Counted from the first letter of the stretch, positions 22,860 through 61,101 are shown. The stretch is DNA of 64,000 nt from Utricularia gibba (GCA_002189035.1 NEEC01000004.1:1116001-1180000); one strand, 5' to 3'. The notes: a model not told the origin generated them from the sequence alone. Made by a program: numbers and translations.

Positions 22860-25834
22860 TCAATCATCGAGATAGTAGTATGATCCAGCAGCCTTTTGCT
22901 CCCGGTCCTTGGTGGATTCCAGTTTGTTGATTCTGGGACGATAGTTTGTGGGGTCTCTTCTGAACGTGATGTCCAAATGCTACATGCATGGATACGAGGA
23001 TAAGAGATTCAGAAACAATAAAAAGGTGACAAGGAAACGGAATAGGAGGAATGCTTACGGATAGGAAGAGGTTCATTCCAGTCAGAAGGGACTGAGGGGA
23101 ATTGGCCACACAATCTAATGAGGGTATTCCCTCGTATACGATCACTCTGTCCGCAAGGTATGTTGCCATGATGAAGTCGTGCTCCACCACGAAGGCAGTC
23201 TTCTTGGCATGGAGTATAAATCTTTTTATGACCTTTGAGGCAACAATACGCTGCTCTGAGTCAAGATAGGCACTGGGCTCATCGATTAGATATATGTCGG
23301 CAGGCTACACGCGTAGTCAAGCAAACAAAATTATGGTGAGTCCACTAATTTTGATAGCAACATTGTGTGAATCGGATGCTAACCTTTCCAAGGCAGAGAG
23401 TAAGGGCAACTCTCTGCAATTCTCCACCAGAAAGGTTCACAACCTCCTGATCCATCAGTTGCTCGATTAAGAGAGGCCTCATCACATCAGAAACAAACTG
23501 CGGATGCATGTATGAATCACGGATTTTTTGATGCAGCAATGCTCTAACAGTGGATGGAAACTTGGGACTGATTTTCTGTGGTTTGTAGGAAACATTAAAT
23601 TCGGGTATTTCCACCTCAGATCCTTCCACTGAATCAGGTTTCAGCAGGCCAGCCTAGAATTCAAACAAATGGTAAGTTAACGAATTTATCAGATCATGAA
23701 CTCTCAACTGCATAAAGAGACACAGGAAACGCACCAGCATTCTTATAAAAGTTGTCTTTCCCGTCCCATTCTCACCAAGCATCACAACAATTTGTGAATC
23801 GGTGAATTCTCCCTCCATGACCTTGAGTTTGAAATTACCCTGAGTTTTGGACATGGTTGGATACTTATATCTAGCGTATGTCTCAACATCTTCAGCACTT
23901 TCTTGCACTGTTTCAGCAACCTGGAAAAGAATATTCCATCAATGGAAAACAAATGGGTCAATAATAAGCCATGACAGTGGTAAATTTACCTTGAAAGTGA
24001 GAGATTCATCACGGAACCTAAGATTCTCGGTGGGGACAAATCCAGCAAGAAATATATTAATTCCTTCTCTTACTGAAAAGGGAAGAGTCACCACACCATA
24101 CACACCAGGTTTCCCGTAGAGGCAGCAGATGAAATCAGATAAATAATCAAGGACGCTAAGATCGTGCTCAACAACGATTACATAACTGAAAAGGGATTGG
24201 ACAGCAAATATTCAAGTGAACAACAGAAAAAAACAGTACATGATAAATCAGCTGAATATTACAAGGAATACGAACCTATTAGGCCGAAGCAAAGATCTGA
24301 TAACCTGGGCGGCTTTAAGCCTCTGCTTCACATCAAGATAACTTGATGGTTCATCAAACATATAGATCTCCGCATTCTGTATAGCAACAACAGCTATAGC
24401 AAATCTCTGAAGTTCTCCTCCAGACAGATCACCAACATTTCGGTCCATAACCTGATTGAGCTCAAGATCATTCCCAAGTTCTCCCTTCATATTCTTTTCA
24501 TCCTTTTGTTCAAGAACTTGACCAACATTTCCTTGAACAGCCTTGGGGATGTGGTCAACATATTGTGGCTTTATGATAGCCTGTTTAATGTAAAACCACA
24601 CATGAACTTAAAAACAATGAATAGAGAAAATTGAAATATAAAACAGGTACCATGTACCATAAACAGTCCCGAAACCATGTTAATGCATGAAACCTAGACC
24701 CAGTTATAGACAATCAGAAGTAAACCCAACAGCCATGTTCCTTATAAGGCCAAAACCGTAACTGGGTTGGCCATAAACCCAATTTAAGCTGCTGTCTTTT
24801 CTAGATAAACTTCGTTCTAAAAACTCATTATAGCAAGTTACCTTCAAATTATCTTCCAAAATGCGAGTAAAGTAATTTTGCAACTCAGAGCCTCGAAAAT
24901 AGGTCAATATCTCCTGCCAGTCAGGAGGATTCTGCAAGAAATTTGTTGTCATGCATGAAAGATGAGTAATACGCTAGAGGTGAAGATACAAAAATCCCAT
25001 TACGCAGAAGTAAAGTTACATTAAAGCGGCCCAAGTTAGGTTTCAGTTTCCCAGCCAAAACTTTCAGGGCAGTTGATTTCCCAATACCGTTGGTCCCAAC
25101 CAATCCAAGAACTTGGCCAGGTCTTGGAACCGGTAATCTGTAGAAAAACATGTATGACGAAATTGAAGGAGAATCTGACGCCAGTTTTAATAAACACAAG
25201 TTAAATGCAACCTGTGCAATTTAAATGTGTTGGGACCATAACGATGAGTTGTGTCCTTCTCTAAATCTTTCGGTAAATTGATAATTTGAATTGCTTCAAA
25301 TGGGCATTTCTGAAATAATAAGCGAAAGTAAGAGGACCAGTGTGCCATCATATACGACAGAACATAAAGATTGTGTAACTTTCAGGTCAAGATAAGCTAA
25401 CCTTGACGCAAATACCACATCCAATGCACAATTCCTCGGATATGAAGGCAATTTTGTCTGCAGGGGTTACTTCAATGCAGAGTTTTCCTGACGGTGACAA
25501 ATTTAACTAGTTAATTAAGCTTCAGGACCTCACTGGTAATGCCACTATCTCCCCAAATAACCACCCCCAAGACAAACAGGCACCGTGAAGTTCAAATAGA
25601 TTCCAATACAAACTCCACTTGCACTTAGAAAATATAAACTTGCACACAAATCGAAAGTTTGCATTTTAGAGTCCATATATCCTCAAGCATTTAGCCCTGG
25701 AAACATGCGCCAAGAAATACATACGTACCAGTTTTGACAACAGGGCAACTCTTTTTGCACTCCTGACGACATTTTTTAGGTTTGCACTTGTCCGAACTCA
25801 CGATAGCAATACGCGTCAACCTCTGATCCGACAT
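22860..25834 (-). CDS. ABCE2: ABC transporter E family / RNase L inhibitor (ribosome recycling factor)
   Basis: [31 protein letters not shown] Fe-S domain, two Walker A motifs ([18 protein letters not shown]), LSGGELQRF / LSGGELQRV signatures, DEPS Walker B motifs and C-terminus GSYYYLDD* (stop at 22860-22862). Confidence 0.97.
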
Positions 25835-26308
25835 CCCTCTCAATTCAACCGATTTCTACCAAGTTTCAGAAAAATCAGGATCCTAGTCGCGAGGTGATAG
25901 ATCCTAATCCCAGCAAAGACCCACCTGAAGTTCTGGAGAAGGAGTGCCGAGATGAGCAAGTAGAGATCGAGCGGTCGGACAGACGCTAGGGTTGAATGCC
26001 GATGCCAAATATACGCCTTTTTTAGATAAAAAAATATAATCAAATAATTTTTAATACGTGCAGACATTTTTTCAATTAAAAGCCCACGAATAGATTCAAG
26101 GCCCAGACGCTACTGTAAGGATTGGGCCGTTATTGCTGGGCGTAACAACTGAATGATGGGCCACATGGGCCGCTACCAAAGTCGCTACTCCTTTGGTTCC
26201 TCGTATGCGAATTGCGAACCGTTGAAATAATGGGAGTCTCTCACACAGATCTCCGATCAGCTGGAAGAGGTTTGGGGATTTGGTGTGCAGGCTGTACATT
26301 GATTGGAG
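25835..26308. promoter_or_regulatory. Probable bidirectional promoter between ABCE and COG6 with site II (TGGGCY) elements
   Basis: Head-to-head ATGs 475 bp apart. TGGGCY/RGCCCA hexamers at 26081, 26100, 26123, 26157 and 26166; telobox-like TAGGGTT near 25987. Confidence 0.55.
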
Positions 26309-29300
26309 ATGGGGAGCGCCACCGCGTTGGCGCCGGGGCTATCGCGGAAGTTGAAGAAGGTATCGGAGACGCGCACAGACGCTGTCGATCTGCTAGCATC
26401 GCTCAATACGCTCTCGACATTCTACACGGAGAACACTGCACAGGCTCGCCGCAATCTGCGATCCACCATAGAGAAACGTGGTTTATCCGTGAATGAGGAG
26501 TTCCTCGCTGCATCTTCTTCTGCACAACAGGTGCACCGACTAAACAGTTTGGTTCGGTTCCCATTGGATTTTTGGTTCTAAAGTAATGGTGATGAATTTG
26601 ATTGGTTTTTAGGCGTTAGATCAGGTTGAGGAAGAGGTCAACGCTCTAGCAGCAAGCTGTGATATGTAAGAACTCTGCTCTCTTCTCTTTATCTCCGTCT
26701 TTGGTGTGCCTAGTTCTATGGATTTATTCAATCTAAGCATCAATTTTACTTTTTTATGATTGGTTTTCCTTGCATTGAATACAAATTATGATTGCTGGAC
26801 TACATCCTCGAAAATTCTTATTGTAGGATTGCAAAAGTTTTAGGCGAGTGTAACGCAAACACTGGTGATATTATTAGCACCACAGAGAGGCTCAAACAAG
26901 AGCTTGAAACTACCACGCAGAGGCAAGAAATAGTGTCATGCTTTCTACGTGACTATCAGCTCTCGAATGATGAGGTGCCGTGTGTCATGCCCTCGGCATT
27001 CAATTTGTTACTTATCATTTTTCCGTCGGCTCGCTTTCAAATATGTCGAGTTCAAAAACCCAAACCTTAACTGTCACTCTTCTTTTTTCTAGATAAAGGC
27101 TTTGCGGGAGGAAGATTTGAGTGAGAACTTTTTCAAGGCTCTTGCTCATGTTCATGACATCCATGCTAACTGCAAAGTACTCCTAAGGACACACCACCAG
27201 GTTCATCTTCATTGATTTGCAGAATTTGTTATTAGAGCAAACCATTTATCAACTATTTTTTTCTCTAGATAATTACAGAAAACTATTGAATTTTCATTCT
27301 TTATCAATATGATATGTTGAACAGCTGTCGCATAGCTCTTCTATTCAAACATTCTACTATTCATATGCTTAGCATTCAATAGGATGTCTTCCACTAAAGT
27401 ATGTGTGATTCATCAAAAAAGCTTTTTGCAGCGGGCTGGTTTGGACTTAATGGATATGATGGCAGTATACCAAGAAGGCGCATATGAGAGGCTTTGCAGG
27501 TGAGTCTCTAGTTTCAATAATGGATTAGTTTTGTGTGTGTCATAATTGTGGTAGACAGTTTTTGAATAATCTTGTATTCTAATTTTACAGTTTAATTAAA
27601 TGGTTTCAACATTTGGATTTTTTGCACCTGTGTTCTAGGTGGGTACAAGCTGAGTGTGCGAGACTTGGCGATCAGGATAATCCTGAAGTCAGTGAACTGT
27701 TAAAAACTGCTGTCCGATGCCTTATGGCAAGACCAGTTCTCTTCAAGTACTGTGCTGAAGAGGTAGTTCAGTTAAATTTTTGCTCATTATCTAAATTCTC
27801 TTATACTGGTTTTTCTAATCTTCAGGTGGCGAATATGAGACACAATACTCTCTTTAGAAGATTTATTGGAGCCCTGACCCGTGGAGGTCCAGGTGGGCTG
27901 CCCAGGCCGATTGAGGTTCATGCTCACGACCCATTAAGATATGCTGGTGACATGCTGGGATGGCTACATCAGGTTTTTTTTTTTAATTTCAATTTTCATT
28001 TCTCGCCAGAGATTTGTCTTTGTTTCCAGGTTATGGTGACATTGTAATGTTTTGACCCCTGATCCTGTGTTGAAGGCGTTGGCATCAGAAAGAGAACTGG
28101 TTCTTGCGTTGCTTTATCCTGATGCTAACGCTGAAACTGGAGCTATTGCCACAAGATTTTCCCGGATCCCAGAGCATGATGATATAAAAGCCGATCCAGA
28201 GTTAAAATTTGTTCTAGGTCGGATCTTTGAAGGAGTTTGCCGGCCATTTAAAATACGGGTGGAGCAAGTTTTACAGTCACAACCTAATTTTATCGTCTCA
28301 TATAAACTTACTAATACTCTGGAGTTCTACAGCCACACTGTGAGTTAATCAGCCCATGCATTAAGAATTGGAAGTGTTTCTTATTCCTTTTGGTTGATTT
28401 GGTTGAGCCATTTCAGTTTCATACTGACAGATATCTGATCTTCTTGGAAGCGAGACAGCTCTGTGGAACACACTTTTAGGCCTCAAGGATGCTGCTCAAA
28501 AAACTTTTTTTGATATGTTGAGAACCCGTGGGGAGAAGCTTTTACGATATCCTCCTTTAGTTGCTGCTGATCTTTCTCCACCTCCAGCATTAAAGGAAGG
28601 TGTATCCATGCTCCTGGAGCTGATTGAGACATACGACACTATGATGGTCTCCGTCTCCGCAAGGAAGCCAGCATTTGAACCCGTCATATCTGCTCTGCTC
28701 GATCCTATTATTCAGGTTCACTTTCTGATCGCACATATCCACTGCCTTTTACTACTATTTGATTCTGTAGAGATATTTTTACTGATATTGCATTTTTCAT
28801 GAAGAAGTTGGTTGAATTTCGACTTATTTCTGTGATTGGATTTGGAGTCTTATTTTGCATCTGTCCTAATTGTTTTGCTAGATGTGTGAACAAGCAGCTG
28901 AGGCGCACAAGTCAAAGGGAGTTGTGCAGCCATCCAGGAGAAACAGAACCACTTCAGATGCTGCTCAGCTCCGCAGGTCATCCATTGATGCTATTTTGGA
29001 TAACGGCACTGCTCTTCCCTCCCAGGTACATATTCTGCCTCGAGGTATAATCATTGTACCGTTTCAGAACTTCTAAAGGGTAAAACTTTCATCACAGACA
29101 CGCGAAACACCCTCCAGGATATTTCTGATCAATTGCTTATGCGCCATCCGACAACCACTATTTGGTCACGAAGTTGCATCCAGGTACGTGGACAAGCTTG
29201 GCTCTATGATAGAGCACCACATCCATGGCCTGATCGAGTCAGAGCTTGAAGCTATACTGCAAAGATGTGGGTTGTCAAACAAGATGCCCCTTTTCCATGA

Positions 29301-29613
29301 TTCTCTCAAGGAACTCGAATCAGGCTCTTCGATCCCACTTGCCGAGAGAGATGATACCGCCCCAGCTGCCCTCTCGGAGTGTCTGAAGACGTTCTTTGGG
29401 CTGATACTGGGAAGCGGGAACACTCTTCCCGAATTCGAGCTGATGCAAGTCCCCAGCCTTCGGTCGGAAGCATGCCAGCGCCTGGCCAAGTCCATTGCGG
29501 ACTCGTATGAAGTCATCTACAAGGCAATAGTGGAGCCAGGGAACAGGTACCCAGACCCGAGATCACTTGCTAGACACCCTCCTAATCAGATTAGAACCAT
29601 TTTAGGGATCTGA
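26309..29613 (+). CDS. COG6: Conserved oligomeric Golgi complex subunit 6
   Basis: MGS.TALAPGLSRKLKKV.E.RTD..DLL.SL.TLS.FY.ENT..ARRNLRSTIEKRGL, ALTRGGPGGLPRPIEVHAHDPLRY.GDMLGWLHQALASEREL, FEGVCRPFK.RVEQVLQSQP and C-terminus LARHPPNQIRTILGI*. Confidence 0.95.
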
Positions 29614-30227: not shown

Positions 30228-31928
30228 TTAGAACTTCTGAATATCACATTCAGGAACAAAGATGCCGTGAAAGCCGTAGGGGACACGGCTGGGAAGCCCC
30301 ACGACGCCGACTACATCAAGTTCCGGTGACTTGGCATCCATCACCAAGAATCTTGATTCACCGCTTGTTTCGTCATGGACGTAAACCACGAGGTATCCAT
30401 CGTCTTCCCCAGTGATAGTCTTCGGGTTTTCGGGTGAGCGGGGCACGAAAATGGCCTCCCCGGCGAAGCAAGACTGCCCGAAATGTCGCCTGCCGACCAC
30501 GCAATCACTAGACAGCGAGATGTCCAGCTTCACTATGCCGGAGAATTTCGGCATCGGATCTCCGATTGCCGCGTAGGCATACCTTATTCGAAAATTTCGG
30601 CATCGGATCATTGTCCATTTTGTGTTGAAAAGGGATGGGGTTCGTCGTTCATACCTGTTCTTTTGTCCGACGAATGCGTCGTTAATAACTGCAAATTCGA
30701 GGTTCATGGGGGAGAGCCGGCGACGAACCACAGTACCTTGCCGGAGATCTATCGTCACCATCTCCATGGAAGATTTTGGATCCAAATCCTCGAGCGCGTT
30801 CTCAATAGAGAGAATGTTGGGGCCAACCATTACTACAGTATCGCCGTCATCCTCGTCCCAAGCATTTGCTGTGTGGATAAGATTTAACCCCGCCGCCTCA
30901 AACCACCGCATCTCCGATTCATTCGCCGCGTATCTTGGTATAATTCCAATTCGGGAAACTTTCCCGGCGTTCGCAGTCACTATTGCATCGCCGTTCACGA
31001 TCCCGACGGGGTTGATTAGGAATTGGTTCTCGTTGAAAATCGCGTATCTTTCAGTGATCGCGAAGTCGTGTAGGAAACAGGGATCTTTAAAAGAGAAAAT
31101 TGGTACGTCGGGCTGTTTTTCTCCAAGGGGGTTTATTCTGAAGAACGTCACAAATGGCGGAATCGGGCTGTATCTGAAACAGAACGTCTCCCCTGTTTTG
31201 GGGTCAGTTTTCGGGTGCGCCGTGAAGTTCGCAGAGAGTTTGCCGGCGAAATCGTGGCGGCCGAGAGTGTCTATCTCGCCGTTGGATTGGATTTCAATGG
31301 CGTAGGGGAGATCGGATTCGCCTAACGCGTAGGGCTTCCCCCCGATAAGTGCCAAACTCGTATTCGCCACTCCGATACCGTTTTCAGGATTATACTCCCC
31401 GGCGATCATCCTGGCCAAGGTGACTGCCCCACGGGCAGCCAATGAAGAGAGACTGGTGATGCCAGAAAATACACTGTGAAAAACAGAGTGTCCCTTCTCC
31501 TTTTCCACTTGATACTTGTAAGTTCTCACAAAGCGGCTACAGAATCTAGCATTTCCACCGGAGATGGTGATCGCGTGAAGCATTCCGTCGCCGTCGAACA
31601 CATGGTACGGGCCTCGGGGAAGGAACTGTGGATTGGGGCCGTTGCGTATATACGTGCCATCGAGCGAGGAGGGCAGGGTCCCTTCTATCACGAAGCATTC
31701 GGTAGGCGGAAGCTCATCCACCGGAGCAAAGTTCCCGGCAAGAACGTGTTTAGGGTCCAAGCAGCGCTTCCGGGGTGGATCAATGAAGGTGTCAATGAAA
31801 TGATCCGCCGCCCTGAAAATTGACCCCAGGAGAGAAGGCGGATGCGGTGGCTTGCGGCGGAGGTTTGCATGCTGAGCGTTGGTCAGAAAACAGTGTTGTG
31901 AAGCGGCGGCTAATGCAAAAAAAGGCAT
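30228..31928 (-). CDS. CCD4: CCD4-like carotenoid cleavage dioxygenase, copy 1 (542 aa; intron 30583-30654)
   Basis: IDPP..DP..VLAGNFAPVDELPPT.C, YIRNGPNPQ.LPRGPYH.FDGDGM, GESDLPY, and all four Fe-ligand His motifs (TAHPK, FLHDF, IH..NAW, YGFHG). ATG at 31928; the ORF-track start at 32021 is a GTG. Confidence 0.93.
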   Translation of the reverse strand: MPFFALAAASQHCFLTNAQHANLRRKPPHPPSLLGSIFRAADHFIDTFIDPPRKRCLDPKHVLAGNFAPVDELPPTECFVIEGTLPSSLDGTYIRNGPNPQFLPRGPYHVFDGDGMLHAITISGGNARFCSRFVRTYKYQVEKEKGHSVFHSVFSGITSLSSLAARGAVTLARMIAGEYNPENGIGVANTSLALIGGKPYALGESDLPYAIEIQSNGEIDTLGRHDFAGKLSANFTAHPKTDPKTGETFCFRYSPIPPFVTFFRINPLGEKQPDVPIFSFKDPCFLHDFAITERYAIFNENQFLINPVGIVNGDAIVTANAGKVSRIGIIPRYAANESEMRWFEAAGLNLIHTANAWDEDDGDTVVMVGPNILSIENALEDLDPKSSMEMVTIDLRQGTVVRRRLSPMNLEFAVINDAFVGQKNRYERRTPSLFNTKWTMIRCRNFRIRYAYAAIGDPMPKFSGIVKLDISLSSDCVVGRRHFGQSCFAGEAIFVPRSPENPKTITGEDDGYLVVYVHDETSGESRFLVMDAKSPELDVVGVVGLPSRVPYGFHGIFVPECDIQKF

Positions 31929-32886
31929 CCCCGGAAAGTGTAGCAGAAGGAAGCTCCGGTGACACAAGGCACCACCATCTCCTGGCTCCCTTCCTCTATT
32001 TGTAGGCGAGCTATTCAACACTACTCACCGCCTGATTCACCTGCAAATCCAGATCCAATCCATTCGAGACCTAAAGAAGAAACCCTGCAATTTTCTTTAT
32101 ATGTGGTCTTGAAAACAAAACCAGGTTTGGGAGTATGTGGTGTAAGGTTAGTTTATGTAACATATGTTTTTGTTTACTGAAAAGTAATATTTAACATCAT
32201 ATATTAATTATCAAGATGGTTTAGTCATTGATTTATAATGTAATATCAATTTTATGTTACAAATTGATTTAACTAATTCTATAATATAATAATATAAAAT
32301 CATTATTTGTCTATAAAATTATTATATATTATTAATAAATAAAAAGACATACACTTTCAATAATCCTACATATGTTAAATTGATTTATTATTTGCTTGAG
32401 AGGTTACTCTTGTTTATCCAAATGGTATAACTGATCCTTAAATTATTAATGTTTTTATTGCAAAATAAAAAAAATAAATCTCTAATGTTTAGAAATTGAG
32501 CAAAATTGATCCCAAATGTTTTATTAATTGACATTTTATTTTTTAAAATGACAAAATTAATCCTCATAATCAAACCCTAATTTTTCCCAAATTTAAACCA
32601 TCATACCAAACAACTCCTAACCTAACCTGCTCTTTGTAATGGATTGGAACACAGACCCCATCAAAACAAATCCAGACTTGAATGAAGAAAACCTACACTG
32701 TTCCTTTACACCTGATTTTCTTAGATTATCAATGAATGCCACGTGTTCAGACCATAATATCGGACGAGTGGGATTTTTTCATACAAAAAAATATCAGAAA
32801 AATAATGTATTCCTTGATTTAGATAAGGAGTCAGCTTGAATTGGCTTGCATTCCCCAACATCATTGCAGCAAAAAATATTTTAATA

Positions 32887-33065
32887 AGTCTTCCAGCGAA
32901 GCAAGGCGCCCAATAATCTGAGTTTGTTTTTTCAAGGGACATGGGCCTGGGCCCGGACAGGGCCCACAGCATTGTTCTAAGATACCAAGGCGCCCAATAA
33001 TAGAAGACCAGGTAAAGTTTTTTTTATTCATTGTCGGGGGTAAAAGAGTCTTCCAGCGAAGCAAG
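32887..33065. repeat. Interleaved short direct repeats
   Basis: AGTCTTCCAGCGAAGCAAG at 32887-32905 and 33047-33065; CAAGGCGCCCAATAAT at 32902-32917 and 32986-33001. Confidence 0.8.
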
Positions 33066-33896
33066 CTGACCAAAAGTGTCGGTGGCATATGAAATATCGT
33101 TGTATGTGAAATAATGTGTTGTTTATATATATAGTATAAATTGATATGCAATAATATGAATTAAATATTTTAATAATTTTTTTATTAAATTACCATTCAT
33201 ATAAAACACATTAATATTGTTTATTTTGACATAAATTAATTCTATCGTATTTAATAGTGCATAAATTAAATGTTATTATATCAAGTGGGTCTGTTTTGTA
33301 TCTATTAAAAATATGGTCATCCCATTTCATTGTGTGAAAAAGTAATTAATCTTAATTAAAAAATTGTGCGAGTATGAGAGGGAATAAGAGGTGTCCACAT
33401 TTGTAATTGATCCGTCATTATTATAAAATGATATAAAGTTACAATTTTAAATGTATGTAGATTAACAAACACTAAAAACATTATATTTTTAAGGTGGAAA
33501 TATTTGTTTTGGATAGTATTTGCTATTTTAGAAAGCAATATTTATTATTTTTCTTGATTACTATTTTTCAGTTTACTCCATGTTTCCAATTTTCTACTAC
33601 ATAGAGCATCTTTACTTATTTCTGGAAATGATAATATAGCATTCCCGAAAATGAGATAAATGATTTCAGAAATGAATAAAATTATTTTTCATTTTTTTAG
33701 AAAACGGAAATAAAGAAACTATGTTTATTTTCGTAAATGATTTAAAATGTAGTTTAAAATTTTTATTTTAATATTATGATTTTTGAAAATAAATACAAAT
33801 TAAAATTAAACTAAAATAAATTAAAAAATTGAAAATGAAATATGAGTATTTCCTGAAATTGATAAATATGCTATTATAAATGGCCGCACATGGGGA

Positions 33897-35706
33897 TTAT
33901 AATTTTTTGAGATCACGTTCAGGAACGAAGATGCCGTGAAAGCCGTAGGGGACCCGGTGGGGTAGTCGCACGGTGGCGACTATATCAAGCTCGGGTGACG
34001 CTGCATCCATCACCACGAATCTCGACTCTCCGCTTTTTTCGTCATGCACATACACTACAAGATGCCCGTCGTCCTCCGCCGCATTCGGATTTTCGGGGCA
34101 TCGGGGGACGAAAATAGGCTCGCCGGAGAAGCGACCCGGCCCGAAATCGCGGCTAACAGCTACACAGTCACGGCCACCATCCTCCTTCATCAGTGAGAGG
34201 TCGAGTTTCACCACGCCGGACATTCTCGGGAACGGATCTCCGATGGCCGCGTACACATACCTTCGTTATTCACACACACTTCTCAATTAAAAAATAAAAA
34301 TAAAAAAACACTATCGGTTAGCCTACTGACGAACAAGTTGGAGAATTATTACAAAAAATAATATTATTAGAACAAAAAAAAGCAATTGGACACAAAAAAT
34401 CGATTACGTACCGATTTTGCCGACCGACAAACGCCGGGTTGATCACCATGAACTCTATGTTCATGACGGACACTAGACAGCGAGCCACCGTGCCCCGCCG
34501 GAGATCGATTTTCACCATCACAGTCGCAGTTTGCAGGAGTTCCATGTCTTCAAGGGCGTGCTCGATACCTAATATATTAGGGGCCAAAATGACAACAACA
34601 TTACCGCCATCCTCTTCCCAGGCATTCGTGAAGTGAATGAAGTTCAGCCTCGGGGTCTCGAACCACCGCATCTCTGATTCGTCTGTCGCGTATCTGGGAA
34701 TAATTCCGATGCGAGGAACTTTTGAGGTTTTCGCCGCCACCATAGCGCCGCCGTTCACGATCCCGATAGGGTTCACTACGATTTGGTTCTCGTTGAAAAT
34801 TGCGTATTTTTTGGTGATCGCGAAGTCGTGTAAAAAGCAGGGGTCTTTGAAGGAGAAGATTGGAACATCCGGCTGCTTTTCCCCGTCGGGGTTGATTCTG
34901 AAAAAGGTTGAAAATGGCTGAATTTGACCGTACCGGAAGGAAAATGTTTCTCCAGTGACCGGGTCGGTTTTCGGGTGCGCTGTCATGCTCCCGGAGAGCT
35001 TCCCGTCGAAATCGTGGCGTCCGAGAGTGTGTATCTCGCCGTCAGATGCGATTTTAATGGCGTAAGGAAGATCCGATTCGCCTAAGGCAAACAACTTTCC
35101 GGCGACCATTGCCAAACTAGTATTGGCCAAGCCGATGCCGCGACCCAGATCATGTTCCCCGGAGATAATCCGTGCCACGCAGAGAGCTCCACGAGCCGCC
35201 AGTCCTGGTAAACTAGTGAAGCCGGAGAACAAACTATGAAAAACAGAGTGCCCCTTTTCTTTCTCCACCTGATATTTGTAAGTTTTCACAAAACGGCTAC
35301 AGAAAATGGCTTTCCCACCAGAAATCGTGATCGCGTGTAGCATACCGTCCCCGTCGAACAGATGGTACGGGCCGCGGGGAAGATAGTGTGGATTTGGGCC
35401 GTTTCGGATATACGCGCCATCGAGGGAGCTGGGCAAAGCGCCGTAGATGACCGAGCATTCTGTCGGCTGGATCTCGCCCACCGGAGAAAAGTTCCCGGCA
35501 AGGATGCGCTTGGGGTCTCTGATGGGATTCCGGGGAGGATCAATGAAGGTGTCGATTAAATGATCCGCCACCGTGAAAAGTACTGCTGCCAGAGACGGCG
35601 ACGCCGCCCCTGGTTTTAGCTGTGTCGGGGTGGTTTGCCGATGGGTTTGAGGAGAGAGAGCCCTGTAAGGTGGGAGAGATTTAGAAGATAACGCTAAAAA
35701 AGCCAT
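33897..35706 (-). CDS. CCD4: CCD4-like dioxygenase, copy 2 (552 aa; intron 34261-34411)
   Basis: Same motifs and four His ligands; phase-2 GT-AG intron at NR/YVY restores the frame. ATG of MAFLAL at 35706. Confidence 0.93.
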
Positions 35707-35759
35707 GGCCGGAAGTGCAGAAACCTCCGGTGGATACAGACCCCTTTTCCATCTCATAT

Positions 35760-36655
35760 ATATATAAAGAAGTAAATAAGTATCTGCAAACAGAGGCGAA
35801 CTAAAAAAATAATTGATATTTTTATGAAAGTAAATTTATTGCGGGCCACCTATGTTGTCCATTTATAAAATTATTCATCCTTATTTTCTATTTTACATAC
35901 CGCAACCAATTTTTTATATATGTGATTATCAATTTTATCAGACACTTAATAAAGATGATTAATTTTGGAATATATCATAGAGCATTGCGGGATCTTCTTC
36001 TTGTATTTTCAATTGTTTTCATGTTGTTAAATTTGAAGATTTATGCCTTGGTGCACAGAAACGTGCGTATTAGATTATTATATAAAAATGAAGATTCAAA
36101 AAAGGAAACAAGTAAGGCCATCCTTTCAAAAAAAATAATTATATAATTGATTTTAATACAATTTAATATTATAATATATATTTTTAAAGTTAAAAATAAG
36201 AATTTGATTTTTATGTGTAAATCCATATTTAGTGATAATTTTATAAAACTAAATTTGTAAATTATATGTTGTTATTATTATAATTTAAATAGATTTACAT
36301 TAAAATTACAATTTAAAATTAAAATATTTCGATGGCTTAAAATCATATTCAATATAGTCATTGAAAACAATAATTGTAAATGTAAATTCAATTTTAAAAT
36401 CACCTCATATAAAAAAAAAATTATCGTTTCATGTTTCTGATAAAATTAGAATGATTGTTTTAAAAAATACTTATCATACAATAGAATATGATATATATTA
36501 GAATTAATTCTACGAAAATATAATTAATTTTTAAATATCCCTAAAATGCCTAAATAGGCAAGCACCGGCTGGGCCGTTAAATTTCGTGTAACCACGCCGC
36601 CTCGGAGACAGGAAAAGTCGGTTCCGACTTCCGAGTAAAGTAATAGGGGGGTGAG
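35760..36655. repeat. Upstream region of CCD4 copy 2, duplicated as the upstream region of copy 3 (~42080-42965)
   Basis: Collinear near-identical blocks, e.g. TTTATGCCTTGGTGCACAGAAACGTGCGTATTAGATTATTA and CGCCGCCTCGGAGACAGGAAAAGTC in both copies. Confidence 0.9.
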
Positions 36656-37277
36656 ATGAATCTGCAAACTGTAACAATAAATAGATTTGCAAAATAACTG
36701 ATTTTGGTTTTAAATTGGCAAAGTAACTAATTTTTTTAAAAAAACATTTGCAATATAACCAACATTCTTAATATATTGATTTTATATTACTTTTCGAAAT
36801 ACTTAATTATAAATATCATTTATAATCTTTAAATGAATTTAAATAATAAATAATAAATAATAAATTTGTATAAAAAAAGTTAGAAATTTACCAAAAAATT
36901 AAGATTAATTCAAAAATACAAAAATAAATATCATCTTAAATAATTGATTAATTTACAATACTTATTTTCAAAATACTTCCAAATATACATTTTCTTATTT
37001 TATCTTTTCAATTTTATTAAAATTACAATTAAAATTTTGTTTCAAACATAATGAAAAAAATATAGTTATACTTAATCTAAGTAAGATATTCAATATTTCT
37101 TACATAAAACATCAAATTGTATATTTAACACTTCAATATATACTTATAAATATATCTTAAAAAATTATATTCTAAATTTGTGAATTCTAATTAAGCATTT
37201 AACATAGTTATTTGTTAAAAAACATATAAGTTTGATATTCCTATATTATATTTTTATTAAATATAAATAATTATTAT

Positions 37278-37763
37278 TGATGGTGACTAAACCAGAGTGA
37301 GGTAATCGGACACTGAAAAGTTGATGAAAGGTGTTCTGACAGACTGGTACAAGTCTACAAATCGCTAAGTGTCAAAATTATTAGCGACAGTCGTTTTGGA
37401 CAGTATGAAAAATAACCGAATTACAGCAACGACCTAGTAGTTGGCGGTTATTTGAGAGCAAGGCCATAGTCCGAACATCAGACATAGAAAGCAATCGATG
37501 TCTATAAAGTTCAGAATTCGGACAAACAAACCTTGTCTATAAATATAGGAAACTCCAAACAAGAAAGAGTTGAACTCAATGCCCTTCACAACCTGTATTT
37601 TCATTCTCCGACGGTTTCCACGTTAAAATCTCTAACTTCCTTATTTCTGTTAATCGCATCGTACTCCACACAATGCGTGAACGTAAATCGGGTACGACGC
37701 ATACGGACGTACCCACAACCCGATAATCGGCTCTTGCCTTAATATCGATTTTTAACCATAACA
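37278..37763 (+). mobile_element. Solo LTR of an LTR retrotransposon (486 bp)
   Basis: Begins TG (37278), ends CA (37763), flanked by identical ATTAT (37273-37277 and 37764-37768). Internal CTATAAATAT TATA box near 37537. GC-balanced island in very AT-rich flanks. The TSD is AT-rich, so a chance match is possible. Confidence 0.7.
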
Positions 37764-38959
37764 ATTATAAAAAGGGATTTAATTAAATTTCTATAAAATA
37801 CCCTATAAACTCATGACATATATTTCATTTTTTTATTAAATATGATGAAATGGATGATCTTTATTTATATTCTATAAAACATATTTAAAAATCATATAAG
37901 TAATCACAAAAAATAATGTAATTTCATATGCATGTAGTTTATATACAATTATTAAAATTTTATAATTATTAAAATCTAAATAATGACATCCTTAATATGG
38001 GGACAATCATGTGGAACAATCACATGTGACATGATTTGATAATACATGTATATTTTGTTAAGGAGAGGAGCACATGGGGAGTTTGTTCATTTATTAATAA
38101 ATCTGTTTTATTCTAAATGATAACTTTCATATCAATAGAATTTATTATGAGTTATTATTCATTAAGTAGAATATATTTTAGGAATCATATTTTTGGTTTG
38201 AAATTAATTTGATGAAATCAGATTTACTGTAAAGAGTAAGTGCAAATATATTTTCCTAAAACTTAAATCATAATATACTAATTAATTTTTTAATTGTAAT
38301 ATAATAATATAATACAATTTTAAAATCAAAGAAAAACAATGAATTTTTTGTCATTGGTTGAAAAAAAAACATATCCTCATGGCACTCGATGGTTTTCGCA
38401 CAATACTATCAACTGTAACTATAGGTTGCAAGCAAAAAAAAATTTATAACGCAATTGTAGATTCTTTTAGAAAACAACTAATAGCATTTATTGATTGCAC
38501 TTGATGTTAAACACCTAATACCATAGAGTGCATCAAAAAATTAAAAAAATTTGAGATATTCTCATTTCACTCTATAAATAAAATAGATATTTCTTATTCT
38601 TAAGTACAATGTTGCGACAATATGTTTATAGTAGTGATAAAATTATTTTATGGCGTAAATATTCTTCGGGATCCATTTGAGTGTATTTCATACAATATGG
38701 ATCATATTCGAGTTATCAACGTTAATCGTTAAATTACATATAAAAAGTTACTTAAATGTATAAAAGAGCAGTTTGATATAAATGCATATAATCTCCTAGT
38801 TACAATAAAATTCTATGATGAACTATCAAACGAGATGAAATGTTTGCATATTTCGAATTCTAATATTTTAAGATATATATTAAACCCAAGCATATATATT
38901 AAGATATATGAAAATAATATATAAATAACTATATATCAAATAATATAATTTTATTAAAC

Positions 38960-40185
38960 ATATTATAAACTAATTTTATACCCTCTTATCAAAGACCTAG
39001 AGGTTTTCTCTTTTATTACTTCTCTGTTCTTCTTTTAGGTGCATTTTAACATATTTCATTTTCTTTGTTTAATAAGCCCTAGAAATTCATTGATTTTTTT
39101 CGCAGAATCGACAGGTATAAACAAAGTGAACAAACTCGAATGAAATTCCTTCTCTTGTTGACTCCGTCAAATCTTCATCAACAGTTTTTCTATTTTCCTT
39201 TTTTTACTATCATTTTTTTGCTACTAAATGCCAGCCGTACGGCGTACATTTGAATATTATTTCAGTGGGACACATCAGACAAGCTAAATTTCCTCCGACT
39301 AAAACCAGAAATATTTAATATTAAATATCATATTGTGTTAAATATCATATTTGGATCTTTCGGGCCATGAAAAAAATCAACTTGAAATACCATTGAAGAT
39401 GCAAATTGGGAACAATAATTTATTTGCAAATGGGGAATTTAATACTTTGGTATATAATCTAGCAATGACTTCAAACAATAAAAGCCTAATTAATCCTTGA
39501 AATATAAAACCCTTTACCTCATCAATAAAAAAAATTCAAATCCTAACACTCTTAGTAAAAGTATCAAGTTTTAACGATGAAAAAATGTTGATCAATTTCG
39601 TGGAACTTGAACCCAAACTATTGCTTCGAACTCATATATGATCAATATTTTCGAAATAAAACTCTTTTCAGTAAGTATGACAACACTCAGAACATTGTGA
39701 TCAAAATGGATATTCTATCTTTATATAATATTCTTTGTTTTGAATATTTAACTTTTAAAGTTTTATGTTCTTACTTTTTGAAAAAAAAATGAATCGTATA
39801 AGATTATGAAATTTTTTTTATCAAGTATAAGATACTGTTATTAAGACTCTCGTCTAACAAATCTAATTTATTAGTTTCGAAAAATTGTTTTGGTTTAGAA
39901 TTATGCCCCCTATATGTTATGATTCATTATGTGCATCATTTTTCCCAATCAAATACCCATCCAAATAATGGTTTGTTGTTTGATTGATCATGGCTCCCAA
40001 GCATAGAGACAAACTTAAAAGTAGAAAATATTAGTTTTCGATAATATTTGCTATTTTAGAAAATGTTATTTCTTATTTTACTTTTTTGCTATTTGCCAGT
40101 TTCCTGATATTTCCAATAATCTACTATTCATGCATTTTTCACTATTTACAAATTAAGTAACGTCATCATATCTTAAACCGGTGGA
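38960..40185. repeat. Downstream region of CCD4 copy 3, duplicated as the downstream region of copy 4 (~43185-44398)
   Basis: Collinear near-identity over ~1.2 kb, e.g. GATTCATTATGTGCATCATTTT...GATCATGGCTCCCAAGCATAGAGACAAACTTAAAAGTAGAAAATATTAG in both. The 3' flank of copy 2 is unrelated. Confidence 0.9.
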
Positions 40186-42004
40186 TTATAATTTTTTGAG
40201 ATCACGTTCAGGGACGAAGATGCCGTGAAAGCCGTAGGGGACCCGCTGGGGTAGTCGCACGGTGGCGACTATATCAAGCTCCGGTGACGCTGCATCCATC
40301 ACTAAGAATCTCGACTCTCCGCTTTTTTCGTCATGCACATACACGACAAGATGTCCATCGTCCTCCGCCGCGTTCGGATTTTCCGGGCATCGGGGGACGA
40401 AAATAGGCTCGCCGGAGAAGCAATCCGGCCCGAAATCGCGGCTAGCAGCTACGCAATCACAGCCACCATCCTCGTTCATCAGTGAGAGGTCGAGTTTCAC
40501 CACGCCGGACATTCTCGGCATCGGATCTCCGATGGCCGCGTACACATACCTTCATTATTCACAGACACTAGTCAATTAAGAAACACTATCGGAATTCGAA
40601 TATTTAGAGGAGGAGAGGCCCCACGGACGAACAAGTTGGGAGAATTATTACAAAAAATAATATTATTAGAAAAAAAAAAAGCAATTGGACACAAAAATCT
40701 ATTACGTACCGATTTTGCCGACCGACAAACGCCGGGTTGATCACCGTGAACTCTAGGTTCATGGCGGACACCGGACAGCGAGCCACAGTGCCCCGCCGGA
40801 GATCGATTTTCACCTTCTCTGTCGCAGTTTGCAGGAGTTCCATGTCTTCAAGGGCGTGCTGGATACCTAACATATTAGGAGCCAATATGACAACAACATT
40901 ACCGCCATCCTCTTCCCAGGCATTCGTGAAGTGAATCAAGTTCAGCCCTGGCGTCTCGAACCACCGCATCTCCGAGTCGTCTGTCGCGTATCTCGGAATA
41001 ATTCCGATGCGGGGAACCTTCGAGGTGCTTGCCGCCACCATAGCGCTGCCGTTCACGAACCCCATCGGGTTAATTACGATTTGGTTCTCGTTGAAAATCG
41101 CGTATTTTTTAGTGATCGCGAAGTCGTGTAAAAAGCCGGGGTCTTTGAAGGAGAAGATTGGAACATCCGGCTGTTTTTCCCCCTCGGAATTGATTCTGAA
41201 AAACGTTAAGAATGGCTGAATTGGACCGTACCGGAAGGAAAATGTTTCTCCAGTGACCGGGTCGGTTTTCGGGTGCGCCGTCATGCTCCCGGAGAGCTCC
41301 CCGTCGAAATCGTAGCGTCCGAGAGTGTGTATCTCGCCGTCAGATGCGATTTTAATGGCGTAAGGAAGATCCGATTCGCCTAAGGAAAACAACTTTCCGG
41401 CGACCATTGCCAAACTAGTGTTGGCCAAGCCGAAGCCGCTATCCAGATCATATTCCCCGGCGATAATCCGTGCCGCGCTGAGAGCTCCACGCGCCGCCAC
41501 TCCTGGTAAACTAGTGAAGCCGGAGAACAAACTATGAAAAACAGAGTGCCCCTTTTCTTTCTCCACCTGATATTTGTAAGTTTTCACAAAACGGCTACAG
41601 AAAATGGCTTTCCCACCAGAAATCGTGATCGCGTGAAGCATACCGTCCCCGTCGAACAGATGGTACGGCCCGCGGGGAAGATAGTGTGGATTTGGGCCGT
41701 TTCGGATATACGCGCCGTCGAGGGAGCTGGGCAAAGCGCCGTAGATGACCGAGCATTCTGTCGGCTGGATCTCACCCACCGGAGCAAAGTTCCCGGCAAG
41801 GATGCGCTTGGGGTCTCTGGTGGGCTTCCGGGGAGGATCAATGAAGGTGTCGATTAAATGATCCGCCACCGTGAAAAGTGTCCCCGCCAGAGACGGCGAC
41901 GCCGCCCCTGGTTTTAGTTGTGTGGGGCTGGCTTGCTTATGGGTTTGTGGAGAGAGAGCATTGTAAGGTGGGATAGTTTTAGAAGATAACGCTAAAAAAG
42001 CCAT
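40186..42004 (-). CDS. CCD4: CCD4-like dioxygenase, copy 3 (552 aa; intron 40550-40709)
   Basis: Four His ligands present; intron at the same position; spliced length 1659 nt, in frame. Confidence 0.93.
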
Positions 42005-44398
42005 GGCCGGAAGTGCAGAAACCTCCCGTGGACACAAACCCCTTTTCCATCTCAGATATTTATAAAGTAAATAATTCAAAGAAGAGGCGAATTAAAAAAT
42101 CATTGATATTGTTCTGAAAGTAAATTTATTACGTGTCATCTATGTTGTCTAATCATCATTATTTTCTATTTTACATACCACGGCCAATTTTTTATATGAT
42201 TGATGATCATTTTTACTACACACTCAAGAGAGATGGTTAATTTTATAACATATCATGTCTGTTTAGAGCATTGGGGGATCTTATTCTTGTCTTTTCAATT
42301 GTTTTCATGTTGTTAAATTTGGAAATTTATGCCTTGGTGCACAGAAACGTGCGTATTAGATTATTATACTAAAATGAAGATTCAAAAAGGGAAACAAGTA
42401 ACGCCATCCTTTCAAAAAAAAATCATTCTATAATTGATTTTAATACAATATAATATTATGATATAATGAAAATTAATATATTTTTTAAAAAATAATAATT
42501 ATAAAAGTTAAAAATAAGAATTTGATTTTTATGTGTAAATCCATATTGAGTGATAATTTTATAAACCTAAATTTGTAAATTATTTGTTGTTATTATTATA
42601 TTTAAATAGATTTACGTTAAAATTACAGTTTAAAATTAAAATAATTCAATAGTTTAAAATTATATTCACTATAATCATTCCCAAAAAATAAATGTAATTG
42701 TAAATTCAATTTTAAAAATCACGTCTTATAAAAAAAAGTTATCATTTCATGTCTCTGATAAAATTAGAATGATTATTTTAAATAATACTTATATACAATA
42801 GAATATGATATATATTAGAATTAATTCTACAAAAATATAATTAACTTTTAAATATCACTAAAATGCCTAAATCGGCCAGCACCGGCCGGGGCCGCCTTGC
42901 CGTTGAAATTTCCGTGAAACAACGCCGCCTCGGAGACAGGAAAAGTCAGCAATAGGGGAGTGAGATTGTTCAAAAACAACAATCATTGGTATGCGTCTTG
43001 AAGTGACACCGAAGCGAAATAAAAGACTGTTTTTGGGTGTCGGGAAGGCAAATGCGCACTGGTTTTGGATTTGAAAGCTTTGTTTCATTAGCTGATTTAG
43101 ATTTTTATGTGTTCAGATTATTTAAATTTAGATAAATTCAAATATATAGATATAAAAATATTCATATCTTTCATTAAGTATACATATTATAAATTAATTT
43201 TATACCCTCTTATCAATGAGCCAGAGGTTTTTACTCTTTTATTACTTCTCTGTTCTTCTTTTATGTGCATTTTAACATATTTCATTTTCTTTGTTTAATA
43301 AGCCTTAGAAATTCATTGATTTTTTTCGCAGAATCGACGGGTATTAACAAAGTGAACAAACTCGAATGAAATTCCTTCTCTGGTTGACTCCGTCAACTCT
43401 TCATGAACAGTTTTTCTATTTTCCTTTTTTTTCTCTCATTTTTTTGCTACAAAATGCCAGCCGTACAATTGAATATTCTTTGAATAGGACACATCAGACC
43501 AGCTAAATTTCCTCCGACTAAAACCAGAAATATTCAATATTAAATATAATATTTGTGTTAAATATCATACTTGGATCTTTCGGGCCATGAAAAAAATCAA
43601 CTTGAAATATCATTGAAGATGCAAATTTGGAACAATAATTTATTTGTAAATGGGGAATTTAACACTTTGGTATATAATCTAGCAATGACTTCAAACAATA
43701 AAAAGCCTAATTAATCCTTGAAATATAAAACTCTTTAACTCATCAATAAAAAAAAATTTCAAATCCTAACACTCTTAGTAAAAGTATCAAGTTTAACGAT
43801 TAAAATTTTGATCAATTTTGTGGAACATGAACCCAAACTATTGGTTCTAACTCATCTATGATCAGTATTTTCAAAATCAAACTCTTTTAGTTACGTATGA
43901 CAACACTCATAACATTGTCATCAAAATGGATATTATATCTTTATACAATATTCTATGTTTTGAATATTTAACTTTTAAAGTTTTATGTTTTTACTTTTTG
44001 AAAAAAACGGATCGTATAAGATTATGAAATTTTTTTATCAAGTGTAAGATATCGTTATTAAGACTCTCGTCTTACAAATCTAATTTATTAGTTTCGAAAA
44101 GTTGGTTTGGTTTAGAATTATGCTTCCAATATGTTATGATTCATTATGTGCATCATTTTTCCCAATCAAATACGCATCCAAATAATGGTTTGTTGTTTGA
44201 TTGATCATGGCTCCCAAGCATAGAGACAAACTTAAAAGTAGAAAATATTAGTTTTCGATAATATTTGCTATTTTAGAAAATGTTATTTCTTATTTTTTTT
44301 TCTATTTTCCATTTTCCTGATATTTCCAATAATATACTAATCATGCGTGTTTCACTATTTACAAATTAAGTAACGTCATCACATCTTTAACCGGTGGA

Positions 44399-46330
44399 TT
44401 ATAATTTTTTGAGATCACGTTCAGGGACGAAGATGCCGTGAAAGCCGTAGGGGACACGGCGGGGTAGTCGCACGGCGGCGACTATATCAAGCTCCGGTGA
44501 CCCTGCATCCATCACCAAGAATCTAGACTCTCCGCTTTTTTCGTCGTGCACATAAGTGACAAGATGCCCCTCGTCCTCCGCCGCATTCGGGTTTCCCGGG
44601 GATCCGGGGACGAAAATAGGCTCGCCGGAGAAGCAACTCGGCCCGAAATAGCGGCTAGCGGCCACACAATCACGGCCACCCTCCTTCATCAGTGAGAGGT
44701 CGAGCTTCACCACCCCTGACATCCACGGCATCGGATCTCCGATGGCCGCGTACGCATACCTTCGTTATTCAAAAAAACATTTACAAATACCCTTCAAGCA
44801 AATCGTATATTTTTTTAATTTAATAATTTTTTAATAGAAATACGACATCAATAATGCCATAGTGAAAAAATCAACTCAAATTTCCTAGAAATAAAAATAT
44901 AAAAAAAGACTATCCTATTCCGGATATTTAGAGGTGAGGCCCTACAGATAAACAAGTTGGAGAATCATATGAACCATAGAATATAACATTATTACAAAAA
45001 AATAAGGAAGTGGACATAAGCAATCGAGTACGTACCAATTTTTCCGACCGACAAACGCCGGGTTGATCACCGTGAACTCTAGGTTCATGGCGGACAACGG
45101 ACGGCGAACAACCGTTCCCCGCCGGAGATCGATTTTCACCATCTCCATCGAAGTGTGCACGAGATCCATGTCTTCAAGGGCGTGCTCGATGGATAAAGTG
45201 TTGGGAGCCAATATGACGACAACGTTGCCGCCATCCTCTTCCCAGGCATTCGTGAAGTGAATGAAGTTCAGCCCCGGGGTCTCGAACCACCGCATCTCTG
45301 ATTCGTCGGTCGCGTATCTGGGAATAATTCCGATGCGGGGAATTTTTGAGGTTTTCGCCGCCACCATAGCGCCGCTGTTCACGATCTCGATAGGGTTCAT
45401 TACGATTTGGTTCTCGTTGAAAATTGCGTATTTTTTGGTGATCGCAAAGTCGTGTAAGAAGCAGGGGTCTTTGAAGGAGAAGATTGGAACATCCGGCTGT
45501 TTTTCCCCGTCGGGGTTGATTCTGAAAAAGGTTAAAAATGGCTGAATTGGACCGTACCGGAAGGAAAATGTTTCTCCAGTGACCGGGTCGGTTTTCGGGT
45601 GCGCTGTCATGCTCCCGGAGAGCTTCCCGTCGAAATCGTGGCGTCCGAGAGTGTGTATCTCGCCGTCGGATGCGATTTTAACGGCGTACGGAATATCGGA
45701 TTCGCCTAAAGCATAGAGCTTTCCGGAAACCATAGCCAAACTTGTATTTGCCAAGCCGAGGCCGCTACCCAGATCATATTCCCCGGCGATAATCCGTGCC
45801 GCGCTGAGAGCTCCACGCGCGGCCAGTCCTGGTAAACTAGTGAAGCCGGAAAATATACTCTGAATAACCGGGTGCCCCTTTTCTTTCTCCACTTGATATT
45901 TGTAAGTCTTCACAAAACGGCTACAGAACATGGCTTTCCCGCCGGAAATCGTGATGGCGTGAAGCATACCATCCCCGTCGAACAGATGGTACGGGCCGCG
46001 GGGCAGGTACTGTGGATTTGGGCCATTTCGGATGTACGCGCCGTCGAGGGAGCTGGGCAAAGCGCCGTGGATGACCGAGCATTCTGTCGGCTGGAGCTCG
46101 CCCACCGGAGCAAAGTTCCCGGCAAGGATGCGCTTGGGGTCTATGGTGCGCTTACGGGGAGGATCAATGAAGGTATTGATTAAATGGTCTGCCGCCGTGA
46201 AAAGTGTCCCCGCCAGAGACGGCGACGCCCCCCCTACTCTTAGTTTTCCGGGGATGGTTTCTTCATGGGTTTGTGCAGACAGGGCACTGTAAGGTGGGAG
46301 CGATTTAGAAGATAACAGTAACAAAGGCAT
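44399..46330 (-). CDS. CCD4: CCD4-like dioxygenase, copy 4 (551 aa; intron 44760-45035)
   Basis: Four His ligands present; spliced length 1656 nt, in frame. ATG of MPLLLL at 46330. Confidence 0.93.
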
Positions 46331-53400: not shown

Positions 53401-53591
53401 TCTTCGTTACTGTTTCCGTACTCACTTTTCTATATCAACAACGAGACTCACTCCACCCACAGGTTTCGTCAGTGTGGTGTAGAATAACAAAGTTGCTGCA
53501 GAAGTTCTTCGTCAAGAGCCATCAGCAAGTACCTACAGCACCTTCGCCATTGGGCAATGGCCAACCTAGTAGCACAAACAGCATTCATTAG
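50425..53591 (+). CDS. GLR2: Glutamate receptor-like channel, clade II, copy A (exons 50425-50683, 50940-52246, 52317-52632, 52713-53119, 53199-53591)
   Basis: Signal peptide + VGVVLD, LIVBP-like ATD (AIIGP, AQVPIVSFTATSP), S1 YDAAVGDITIIANRS..VDFSLPY, M1-M3 with WYSFSTMVF and SYTANLASLLTV, S2 DEIP and GGFGFAFP.GSPLVSD.S.A.LNVTE. Typical five-exon clade-II structure. Confidence 0.93.
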
Positions 53592-59300: not shown

Positions 59301-59450
59301 GGATTCGCGGCATTCTTCATTATACTCATTTTCCTATATCAACAACGAGACTCATTCCGCCTGCAGGGTTCATCAGTGTGGCGTAGAATAAAAAAGTTGC
59401 TGCAGAGGTTCTTCGTCAAGAGCCAGCAGCAAGTAGCCCCAACTTCCTGA
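56358..59450 (+). CDS. GLR2: Glutamate receptor-like channel, clade II, copy B (exons 56358-56616, 56850-58156, 58230-58545, 58626-59032, 59112-59450)
   Basis: Same architecture and in-frame junctions as copy A; shorter C-terminal tail. Confidence 0.93.
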
Positions 59451-61089: not shown

Positions 61090-61101
61090 TTGACTAGTCA
61101 A
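61090..61101. promoter_or_regulatory. Palindromic double W-box upstream of GLR copy C
   Basis: TTGACTAGTCAA is two inverted TTGACT W-boxes, ~370 bp upstream of the ATG. Confidence 0.5.

Follow-up and report, generated by a model that had tools for sequence, protein, structure and literature searches.

A fast-evolving tandem array of four CCD4 genes makes up the sole CCD4 lineage of Utricularia gibba

The genome of Utricularia gibba carries a tandem array of four CCD4 genes, found at positions 30228-46330 of the 64,000-nucleotide stretch analysed here (GCA_002189035.1 NEEC01000004.1:1116001-1180000; the whole stretch is called the window below). The genes, named c1 to c4, are co-oriented on the minus strand and each has a long exon 1 and a short exon 2. 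The plant's only CCD4 lineage has expanded here in tandem and evolves fast, with nothing out of the ordinary; neofunctionalisation is neither supported nor excluded. A first-pass annotation of this DNA had read the four copies as neofunctionalised because of their distance from the CCD4 consensus. That reading is not borne out: an unrelated neighbouring gene coding a DUF1644 protein has departed equally from its own consensus, the CCD4 changes are evenly distributed over the proteins, the ratio of nonsynonymous to synonymous divergence (ω) is at most 0.12 against 0.09 between two other Lamiales, and the positions that the literature links to selection of the cleaved bond are canonical.

Wang et al. 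(2019, Nat Commun; PMC6379432) list proteins identical to those of c1 to c4, as AUGUSTUS predictions, in their Supplementary Data 5. Of the 14 U. gibba CCDs given there, seven are NCED-like, four are CCD4 and one each is CCD1, CCD7 and CCD8 (PMC6379432). The array would then be the entire U. gibba CCD4 complement, as far as the 2019 survey goes, and at least one copy probably keeps the ancestral role since these are the only CCD4s of the plant. The locus has no canonical-looking CCD4, as had been noticed before, and none is known from the rest of the genome according to the published survey. The sequences became public in 2019 and lineage-specific tandem expansion of CCD4 is a known kind of event; the array and its divergence were previously undiscussed. 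Apart from the supplementary sequences of 2019, the literature searched contained no report on CCD4 or on apocarotenoid chemistry in Utricularia.

Divergence of the array and substitution rate of the lineage

The distance of the array from other CCD4s was measured at the 310 alignment columns with a conservation of at least 90% among 50 canonical CCD4s. Copies c1 to c4 differ at 48-60 of these columns (15-19%), with 30 columns changed in all four and the highest count in c2 (60/310). Ordinary canonical CCD4s have no more than 4% of the conserved columns changed, the maximum being ~10%, and the CCD4s of a divergent Lamiales clade discussed below differ at 54-96 of the 310. The departures reported initially are thus real, but the impression that they gather around the metal ligands is not confirmed. 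Within four residues of a ligand 6 of 46 conserved columns are changed, compared to 23 of 257 elsewhere (p 0.26), so that the departures are spread evenly along the protein. The earlier description placed them beside the ligands because it looked there. It also misjudged some of the reference strings. What was given as ADIQI reads FNEIQIG in canonical Lamiales CCD4, where only the changes I to N and G to V/L are new in the array, and the segment before the second His, given as R-P-S-FLHDF, reads MTSPSFLHDF.

A control for the rate of the lineage is provided by the DUF1644 gene of the window. The U. gibba protein differs at 23 of the 127 covered columns (18%) out of 136 conserved ones, its Genlisea counterpart at 12%, and that of every other species at no more than 4%. 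In the CCD4 tree the tips of the array lie 0.89-0.98 away from the ancestral Lamiales node, the median of the other species being 0.29; the DUF1644 tree, in which the window gene is sister to Genlisea, displays a branch-length excess that is similar or larger. The remodelling of the array is therefore real yet not specific of CCD4, the excess being common to an unrelated neighbour. Lentibulariaceae are reported to have some of the highest angiosperm substitution rates in all three genome compartments (PMC5749785), and very high rates are likewise reported in a second study (PMC4358910).

The DUF1644 gene lies at 9-1142 (+) and is most closely related to M569_02615 of Genlisea aurea. Its open frame extends ~90 codons past the end of the orthologues.

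Synonymous divergence follows the same trend. The canonical CCD4s of Erythranthe nasuta and Sesamum indicum differ by a nonsynonymous divergence (dN) of 0.086 and a synonymous divergence (dS) of 0.97, giving the ω of 0.09 mentioned above. The U. gibba copies differ from either species by a dN of 0.23-0.27 and a dS of at least 2.1, which is saturated. The dN of the array relative to canonical Lamiales CCD4 is ~3x higher and dS is up at least as much. Since dS scales with dN and ω stays at or below 0.12, the length of the branch is explained by a fast clock, the constraint being normal.

Within the array, c1 is separated from c2-c4 by a dS of ~1.05-1.13 with ω 0.18, while c2-c4 differ among themselves by a dS of 0.11-0.23 with ω 0.30-0.42. 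The differences among c2-c4 avoid conserved columns (12% vs 27%, p 4e-6), and these three copies read as being under purifying, though relaxed, selection. The open frames together with purifying selection make it probable that the copies are active, a prediction in line with the first-pass annotation. The observation that the copies differ from one another close to the ligands is also correct: residues beside three ligands vary, with HTA or HFT after the third His and NF or SM before the first His, and A, M or T follows EF after a second-shell acid. Copy c2 has the most private changes at positions invariant in canonical CCD4 (such as P261Q, G353R, E396V and P411L, c3 numbering), in addition to C475R at a position conserved to 98%.

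Catalytic and specificity positions

The four copies match the Pfam family RPE65 (PF03055), exon 1 covering profile positions 2-363 (E 1e-79 to 1e-85) and exon 2 positions 365-469 (E 1e-26). The best 120 database matches are all CCD4 and the top ones are canonical Lamiales CCD4s with 62-66% identity; no CCD4 of Genlisea or another close relative is among the database matches listed. NCED and CCD1 representatives have 37-40% identity to the array and are outside CCD4 in the tree.

The nearest solved structure is maize VP14 (PDB 3NPE), an NCED that is homologous to the array across the whole exon 1 (E 7e-78) and whose metal ligands and second-shell acids align with those of c1-c4. VP14 belongs to another subfamily, with Val478, Phe411 and an EPWPK loop, and cleaves 9-cis-epoxycarotenoids at the 11,12 bond (PMC5133782). 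The four Fe-ligand histidines (equivalent to VP14 H298, H347, H412 and H590) and the three second-shell acids (E264, E477 and E530) are kept in c1-c4, as had been recognised initially. The acid of the NLEF motif, at the E477 position, had been taken as unchanged. It is indeed acidic in the array, but it is Glu in c1-c4 and Asp in all 50 canonical CCD4s.

The positions attributed to selection of the cleaved bond are, in VP14 numbering, L170/F171, F411, V478, F589 and the loop 499-503 (reviewed in PMC5133782). At the equivalent positions c1-c4 have L(V)/F, I, F, F and a DPMPK-like loop, so that all four copies agree with canonical CCD4. The array has NLEF and GFHG, keeps HLFDG, with Val at the Leu170 position in c1 only, and its loop variants are DPMPK, DPFPR, DPMPR and DPMPW. 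The marks of enzymes cleaving the 7,8 bond are absent: Phe and not Leu is found at position 478, the loop is of the DPMPK type, Leu or Val and not Phe occupies position 170, and there are no insertions of the CCD4.1 type. Citrus CCD4b1 and Verbascum CCD4.1, by contrast, have Leu in place of V478 and their 499-503 loops are altered. The Buddleja paper on 7,8 cleavage points to loop indels only (PMC13538092), and the Gardenia CCD4 paper names no residues tied to 7,8 cleavage.

Canonical Lamiales CCD4 (CCD4.2 of Verbascum, Buddleja davidii and Buddleja alternifolia, Sesamum and Erythranthe) shares with the array the RPE65 fold, the four histidines and three acids, Phe at the V478 position, the DPMPK-type loop, the lack of CCD4.1-type insertions and a single phase-2 intron, whose position before Y-V-Y-A-A and phase are identical in E. 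nasuta and S. indicum. It also provides the best matches of the array and the clade preferred by maximum likelihood (ML). The array differs from it by a branch 3-4x longer, by the fraction of conserved columns changed (15-19%), by the replacement of the second-shell Asp by Glu, by four tandem copies instead of one and by the presequence. The latter has 46-52 residues in the array versus 89-110 in canonical CCD4, with few acidic residues, and is rich in S, T, A and P.

Function of the array

On balance, c1-c4 are probably active plastidial CCD4s of the ordinary kind, whose four copies would have been retained for dosage or organ-specific expression while the genome lost the other CCD4 types. 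Each copy would code a carotenoid cleavage dioxygenase with non-haem iron, a seven-bladed propeller and a short presequence at the N terminus. We infer that these enzymes still cut cyclic carotenoids in plastids, at the bond and in the manner usual for CCD4, and would thereby control carotenoid turnover. Their large distance from the consensus would result from the high substitution rate of Lentibulariaceae under ordinary purifying selection and not from a functional shift. The relaxed constraint in c2-c4 and the copy-specific representation in RNA described below would fit subfunctionalisation in dosage or expression.

Several observations weigh against this reading. The departures include P157H/Q, R387D, D418E and F481I (c3 numbering) at positions invariant in the 50 canonical CCD4s, the two residues following the third His are changed as well, and about one third of the 30 shared departures match residues common in the divergent clade. 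The presequence is ~40-50 residues shorter than in canonical CCD4 in all copies. The saturation of dS to other Lamiales means that ω of the stem branch is only roughly bounded, and the rate control consists of one neighbouring gene plus literature.

It is unlikely, by comparison, that at least one copy gained a new cleavage position or substrate, as happened for citrus CCD4b1, Gardenia CCD4a and the Buddleja and Verbascum CCD4.1/4.3, leading to Utricularia-specific pigments, volatiles or signals. Tandem CCD4 duplicates repeatedly shift in specificity, and Buddleja paralogues that are ~95% identical differ in cleavage site (PMC13538092); CCD4 regiospecificity can shift with very few differences. 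The array is also as far from the consensus as members of the clade of 7,8-cleavers, its paralogues differ beside the ligands, ω is raised among c2-c4 and the copies are differently represented across RNA samples. These points are offset by the equal excess divergence of the unrelated DUF1644 neighbour, by an ω of the long branch at background level, by changes that do not cluster near the active centre and by the canonical state of all literature-named bond-selection positions, unlike citrus CCD4b1 and Verbascum CCD4.1. In addition, one copy or more of a plant's sole CCD4s probably keeps the ancestral role, and unusual Utricularia apocarotenoids were not found in the literature search. A narrower version, in which the sole CCD4 lineage re-expanded after the other types were lost and one or more copies make an apocarotenoid specific to Utricularia, perhaps in traps or in the yellow corolla, the others being housekeeping enzymes, is rather doubtful. 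The clearest contrast for such a new product would be c1 versus c2-c4, which differ beside three ligands.

If the array is an ordinary set of CCD4s, departure from consensus in fast lineages such as Lentibulariaceae needs comparison with neighbouring genes or the whole genome, and with synonymous change, before a functional reading is given to it. Other findings of remodelled proteins in the U. gibba genome need the same check. A plant with a minimal genome would have lost the divergent CCD4 types kept by other Lamiales, yet multiplied the one that it kept, so that four copies are now expressed or could be. The array is thus a compact system to ask whether CCD4 duplicates are kept for dosage, organ-specific expression or new chemistry.

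Origin of the array within Lamiales CCD4

Besides canonical CCD4s, Lamiales carry those of a divergent clade (CCD4.1/4.3), to which the 7,8;7',8' cleavers of Buddleja and Verbascum belong (PMC13538092). The four U. gibba genes would be tandem duplicates of an ancestral Lamiales CCD4, most likely of a canonical, 9,10-cleaving member of the CCD4.2 type. Constrained ML searches under LG+F+G4 gave a log likelihood (lnL) of -35354.6 with the array within canonical Lamiales CCD4, -35385.2 with the array outside all canonical CCD4 and -35397.7 with the array in the divergent clade. The canonical placement leads by 30 lnL over the position outside both and by 43 over the CCD4.1/4.3 clade, the latter margin being ~37 under a posterior mean site frequency (PMSF) mixture model used as second model. 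The approximately unbiased (AU) test gave p values of 0.83 for the canonical placement, 0.26 for the one outside both clades and 0.12 for the CCD4.1/4.3 clade. The best ML tree is thus the canonical one, while the AU test rejects neither alternative. Quick free searches were unstable, placing the array in canonical CCD4 beside two fast Lamiaceae paralogues, in a trichotomy or as sister to all canonical CCD4s, which also speaks against a firm placement; because of this inconsistency the constrained searches and the AU test were relied on. Overall, a canonical origin of the array is reasonably likely.

The competing possibility, that the array derives from the divergent CCD4.1/4.3 lineage, whose ancestral locus also carries the canonical gene, and that U. 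gibba lost the latter, is improbable. CCD4.1/4.3 genes, among them those of the Buddleja and Verbascum enzymes producing crocetin dialdehyde by 7,8;7',8' cleavage, resemble the array in being tandem duplicates at the same ancestral locus, in their comparable distance from the consensus, in some residue states and, for the Andrographis member XP_051137297 (P0244), in the ABCE-COG6 neighbourhood of the CCD4 gene. Besides the tree that the AU test does not reject, this origin is favoured by the split of diagnostic columns (5-9 canonical versus 7-10 divergent at a 70% threshold) and by shared departures such as N158S, G310V, F354L and R461G, which are common residues of the divergent clade. The matching states are nevertheless conservative exchanges prone to homoplasy, and the lnL of this placement is the worst of the three. 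The identity of the array to a divergent-clade CCD4 of E. nasuta is 54-58%, below that to canonical CCD4. The array lacks both insertions of P0244 and CCD4.1-type genes as well as their altered 499-503 loop, and it keeps the canonical GKL, GP-PPF and DPMPK motifs.

Synteny was considered as arbiter of the subclade of origin and rejected. In E. nasuta (L001 13968-16813) and B. alternifolia (L007 18638-23538; PMC13538092) a canonical CCD4 is followed by a divergent-clade one, tail to tail, and in Paulownia (L005) at least three RPE65 genes are found in 20 kb with canonical and divergent types side by side. As both types are adjacent and orientations differ, synteny shows that the array is at the same ancestral locus but not from which member it comes. 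No non-CCD neighbours are shared with the E. nasuta, S. indicum, canonical Andrographis, Paulownia or Buddleja loci. The two-type CCD4 cluster seems ancestral in core Lamiales, U. gibba having kept one type only.

In Andrographis paniculata WJEG01000054.1 (L004 1-6963) COG6 and CCD4 are each flipped relative to ABCE when compared to U. gibba. The orientation differences at the ABCE-COG6-CCD4 locus suggest local inversions.

Buddleja alternifolia, with 12 CCD4 paralogues in tandem clusters that evolve by birth and death (PMC13538092), resembles U. gibba in its lineage-specific expansion and young gene pairs. In Buddleja both the canonical and the divergent type are kept, pseudogenes are present and the activities were assayed; the U. 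gibba array has four copies of a single lineage and no pseudogene fragments in the window.

Gene structure, duplicated units and RNA evidence

The gene models (Table 1) agree with the first description of four co-oriented CCD4 genes with full open reading frames of 542-552 codons. Each gene has one GT..AG intron of phase 2, interrupting the identical codon (N-R|Y-V/A-Y-A-A). Intron GC content is 27-33% in c2-c4 and 42% in the putative intron of c1, which is in frame and contains a 17-nt repeat of the exon 2 start (GATCCGATGCCGAAATT), the two copies being 49 nt apart. The published AUGUSTUS model of the Wang et al. (2019) set continues c1 coding through these 72 nt. A deletion or duplication around the splice site seems to have left the putative intron behind as its remnant.

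According to self-comparison, the duplications of c2, c3 and c4 took in ~0.9-1.3 kb of flank; the duplication of the c2 and c3 flanks is part of a 2.8-kb unit with 89.5% identity by self-blastn. The split of c1 was early (dS ~1.1), and c2-c4 would be recent products of unequal crossing-over in which the units, a few kb long, included the flanks. A tblastn search found no further CCD4 fragments or pseudogenes within the window.

RNA evidence comes from assembled contigs of few small runs. Runs X1-X4 contain 0.86-0.87 of the sampled words of the c3 region (40186-42079), close to the exonic share, and run X10 contains 0.66 of the words of the c4 region (44399-46363). Support for c2 is weak: the c1-c2 stretch gave short X10 contigs only, all on c2, one of which skips exactly the predicted 151 nt of the c2 intron (34257 to 34409, ambiguous by 3 nt). 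No contig covers c1 or the intergenic DNA in four small runs of assembled contigs, a sample that cannot show absence and makes the lack of c1 uninformative. RNA thus supports c3 and c4, weakly c2, and none is seen for c1.

It is quite doubtful that part of the array is being lost, with c1 or c2 decaying as redundant copies after duplication: the missing c1 contigs, the GC-richer c1 intron with its duplicated piece of exon 2, the weak c2 signal, the five c2 changes named above with the highest departure count and the ω among the young copies would fit decay, but all four frames are open with every ligand intact, c1 has been under long-term purifying selection relative to the others (ω 0.18 over dS ~1.1), the RNA sample is too limited to show absence and a spliced c2-like contig exists.

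Table 1. Coordinates of the CCD4 genes, their exons, introns and duplicated flanks, and of the two genes used as synteny anchors.
Feature	Coordinates	Strand	Product or basis
c1	31928..30655 + 30582..30228	-	542 aa
c2	35706..34412 + 34260..33897	-	552 aa
c3	42004..40710 + 40549..40186	-	552 aa
c4	46330..45036 + 44759..44399	-	551 aa
c1 exon 1, from Met to splice donor; c1 is the oldest copy and has diverged most	30655..31928	-	Pfam RPE65 E 5e-85
c1 putative intron, 72 nt	30583..30654	-	at homologous splice position
c1 exon 2 with stop codon	30228..30582	-	RPE65 profile positions 365-469
c2 exon 1	34412..35706	-	gene model, RPE65 match
c2 intron, 151 nt	34261..34411	-	gene model and RNA contig skipping 151 nt
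c2 exon 2 with stop codon	33897..34260	-	gene model, RPE65 match, RNA contig
c2 upstream flank	35707..36619	.	duplicate of c3 upstream flank 42005-42947 (self-blastn)
c3 exon 1	40710..42004	-	gene model, RPE65 match, RNA runs X1-X4
c3 intron, 160 nt	40550..40709	-	gene model
c3 exon 2 with stop codon	40186..40549	-	gene model
c3 downstream flank	38892..40185	.	duplicate of c4 downstream flank 43120-44398, 91% identity (self-blastn)
c4 exon 1	45036..46330	-	gene model, RPE65 match, RNA run X10
c4 intron, 276 nt	44760..45035	-	gene model
c4 exon 2 with stop codon	44399..44759	-	gene model
COG6 gene, immediate neighbour of c1, synteny anchor	26306..29613	+	Pfam COG6_N and COG6_C on its exons; matches the COG6 gene beside Andrographis P0244
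ABCE/RLI-type ABC gene exons, second anchor	25390..25869	-	tblastn with Andrographis locus L004

Neighbouring genes and other features of the window

The ABCE/RLI-type gene is further backed by an ABC_tran match at 24248-24601. Upstream of the ABC and COG6 genes there is a cytochrome P450 exon at 19025-19558 (-) (Pfam p450, E 4e-10). At least three glutamate-receptor-like genes follow one another in tandem at 50903-64000 (+), with ANF_receptor exons at 50903-52294, 56861-58204 and 61741-63303 and a Lig_chan exon at 52748-53260.

The GC content of the window contrasts between coding regions (45-49%) and the spacers among the CCD4 copies (24-29%). The AT-rich spacer upstream of c4 contains, at 46754-47618, degenerate direct repeats with 65-74% identity at offsets of ~370 and ~710 nt.

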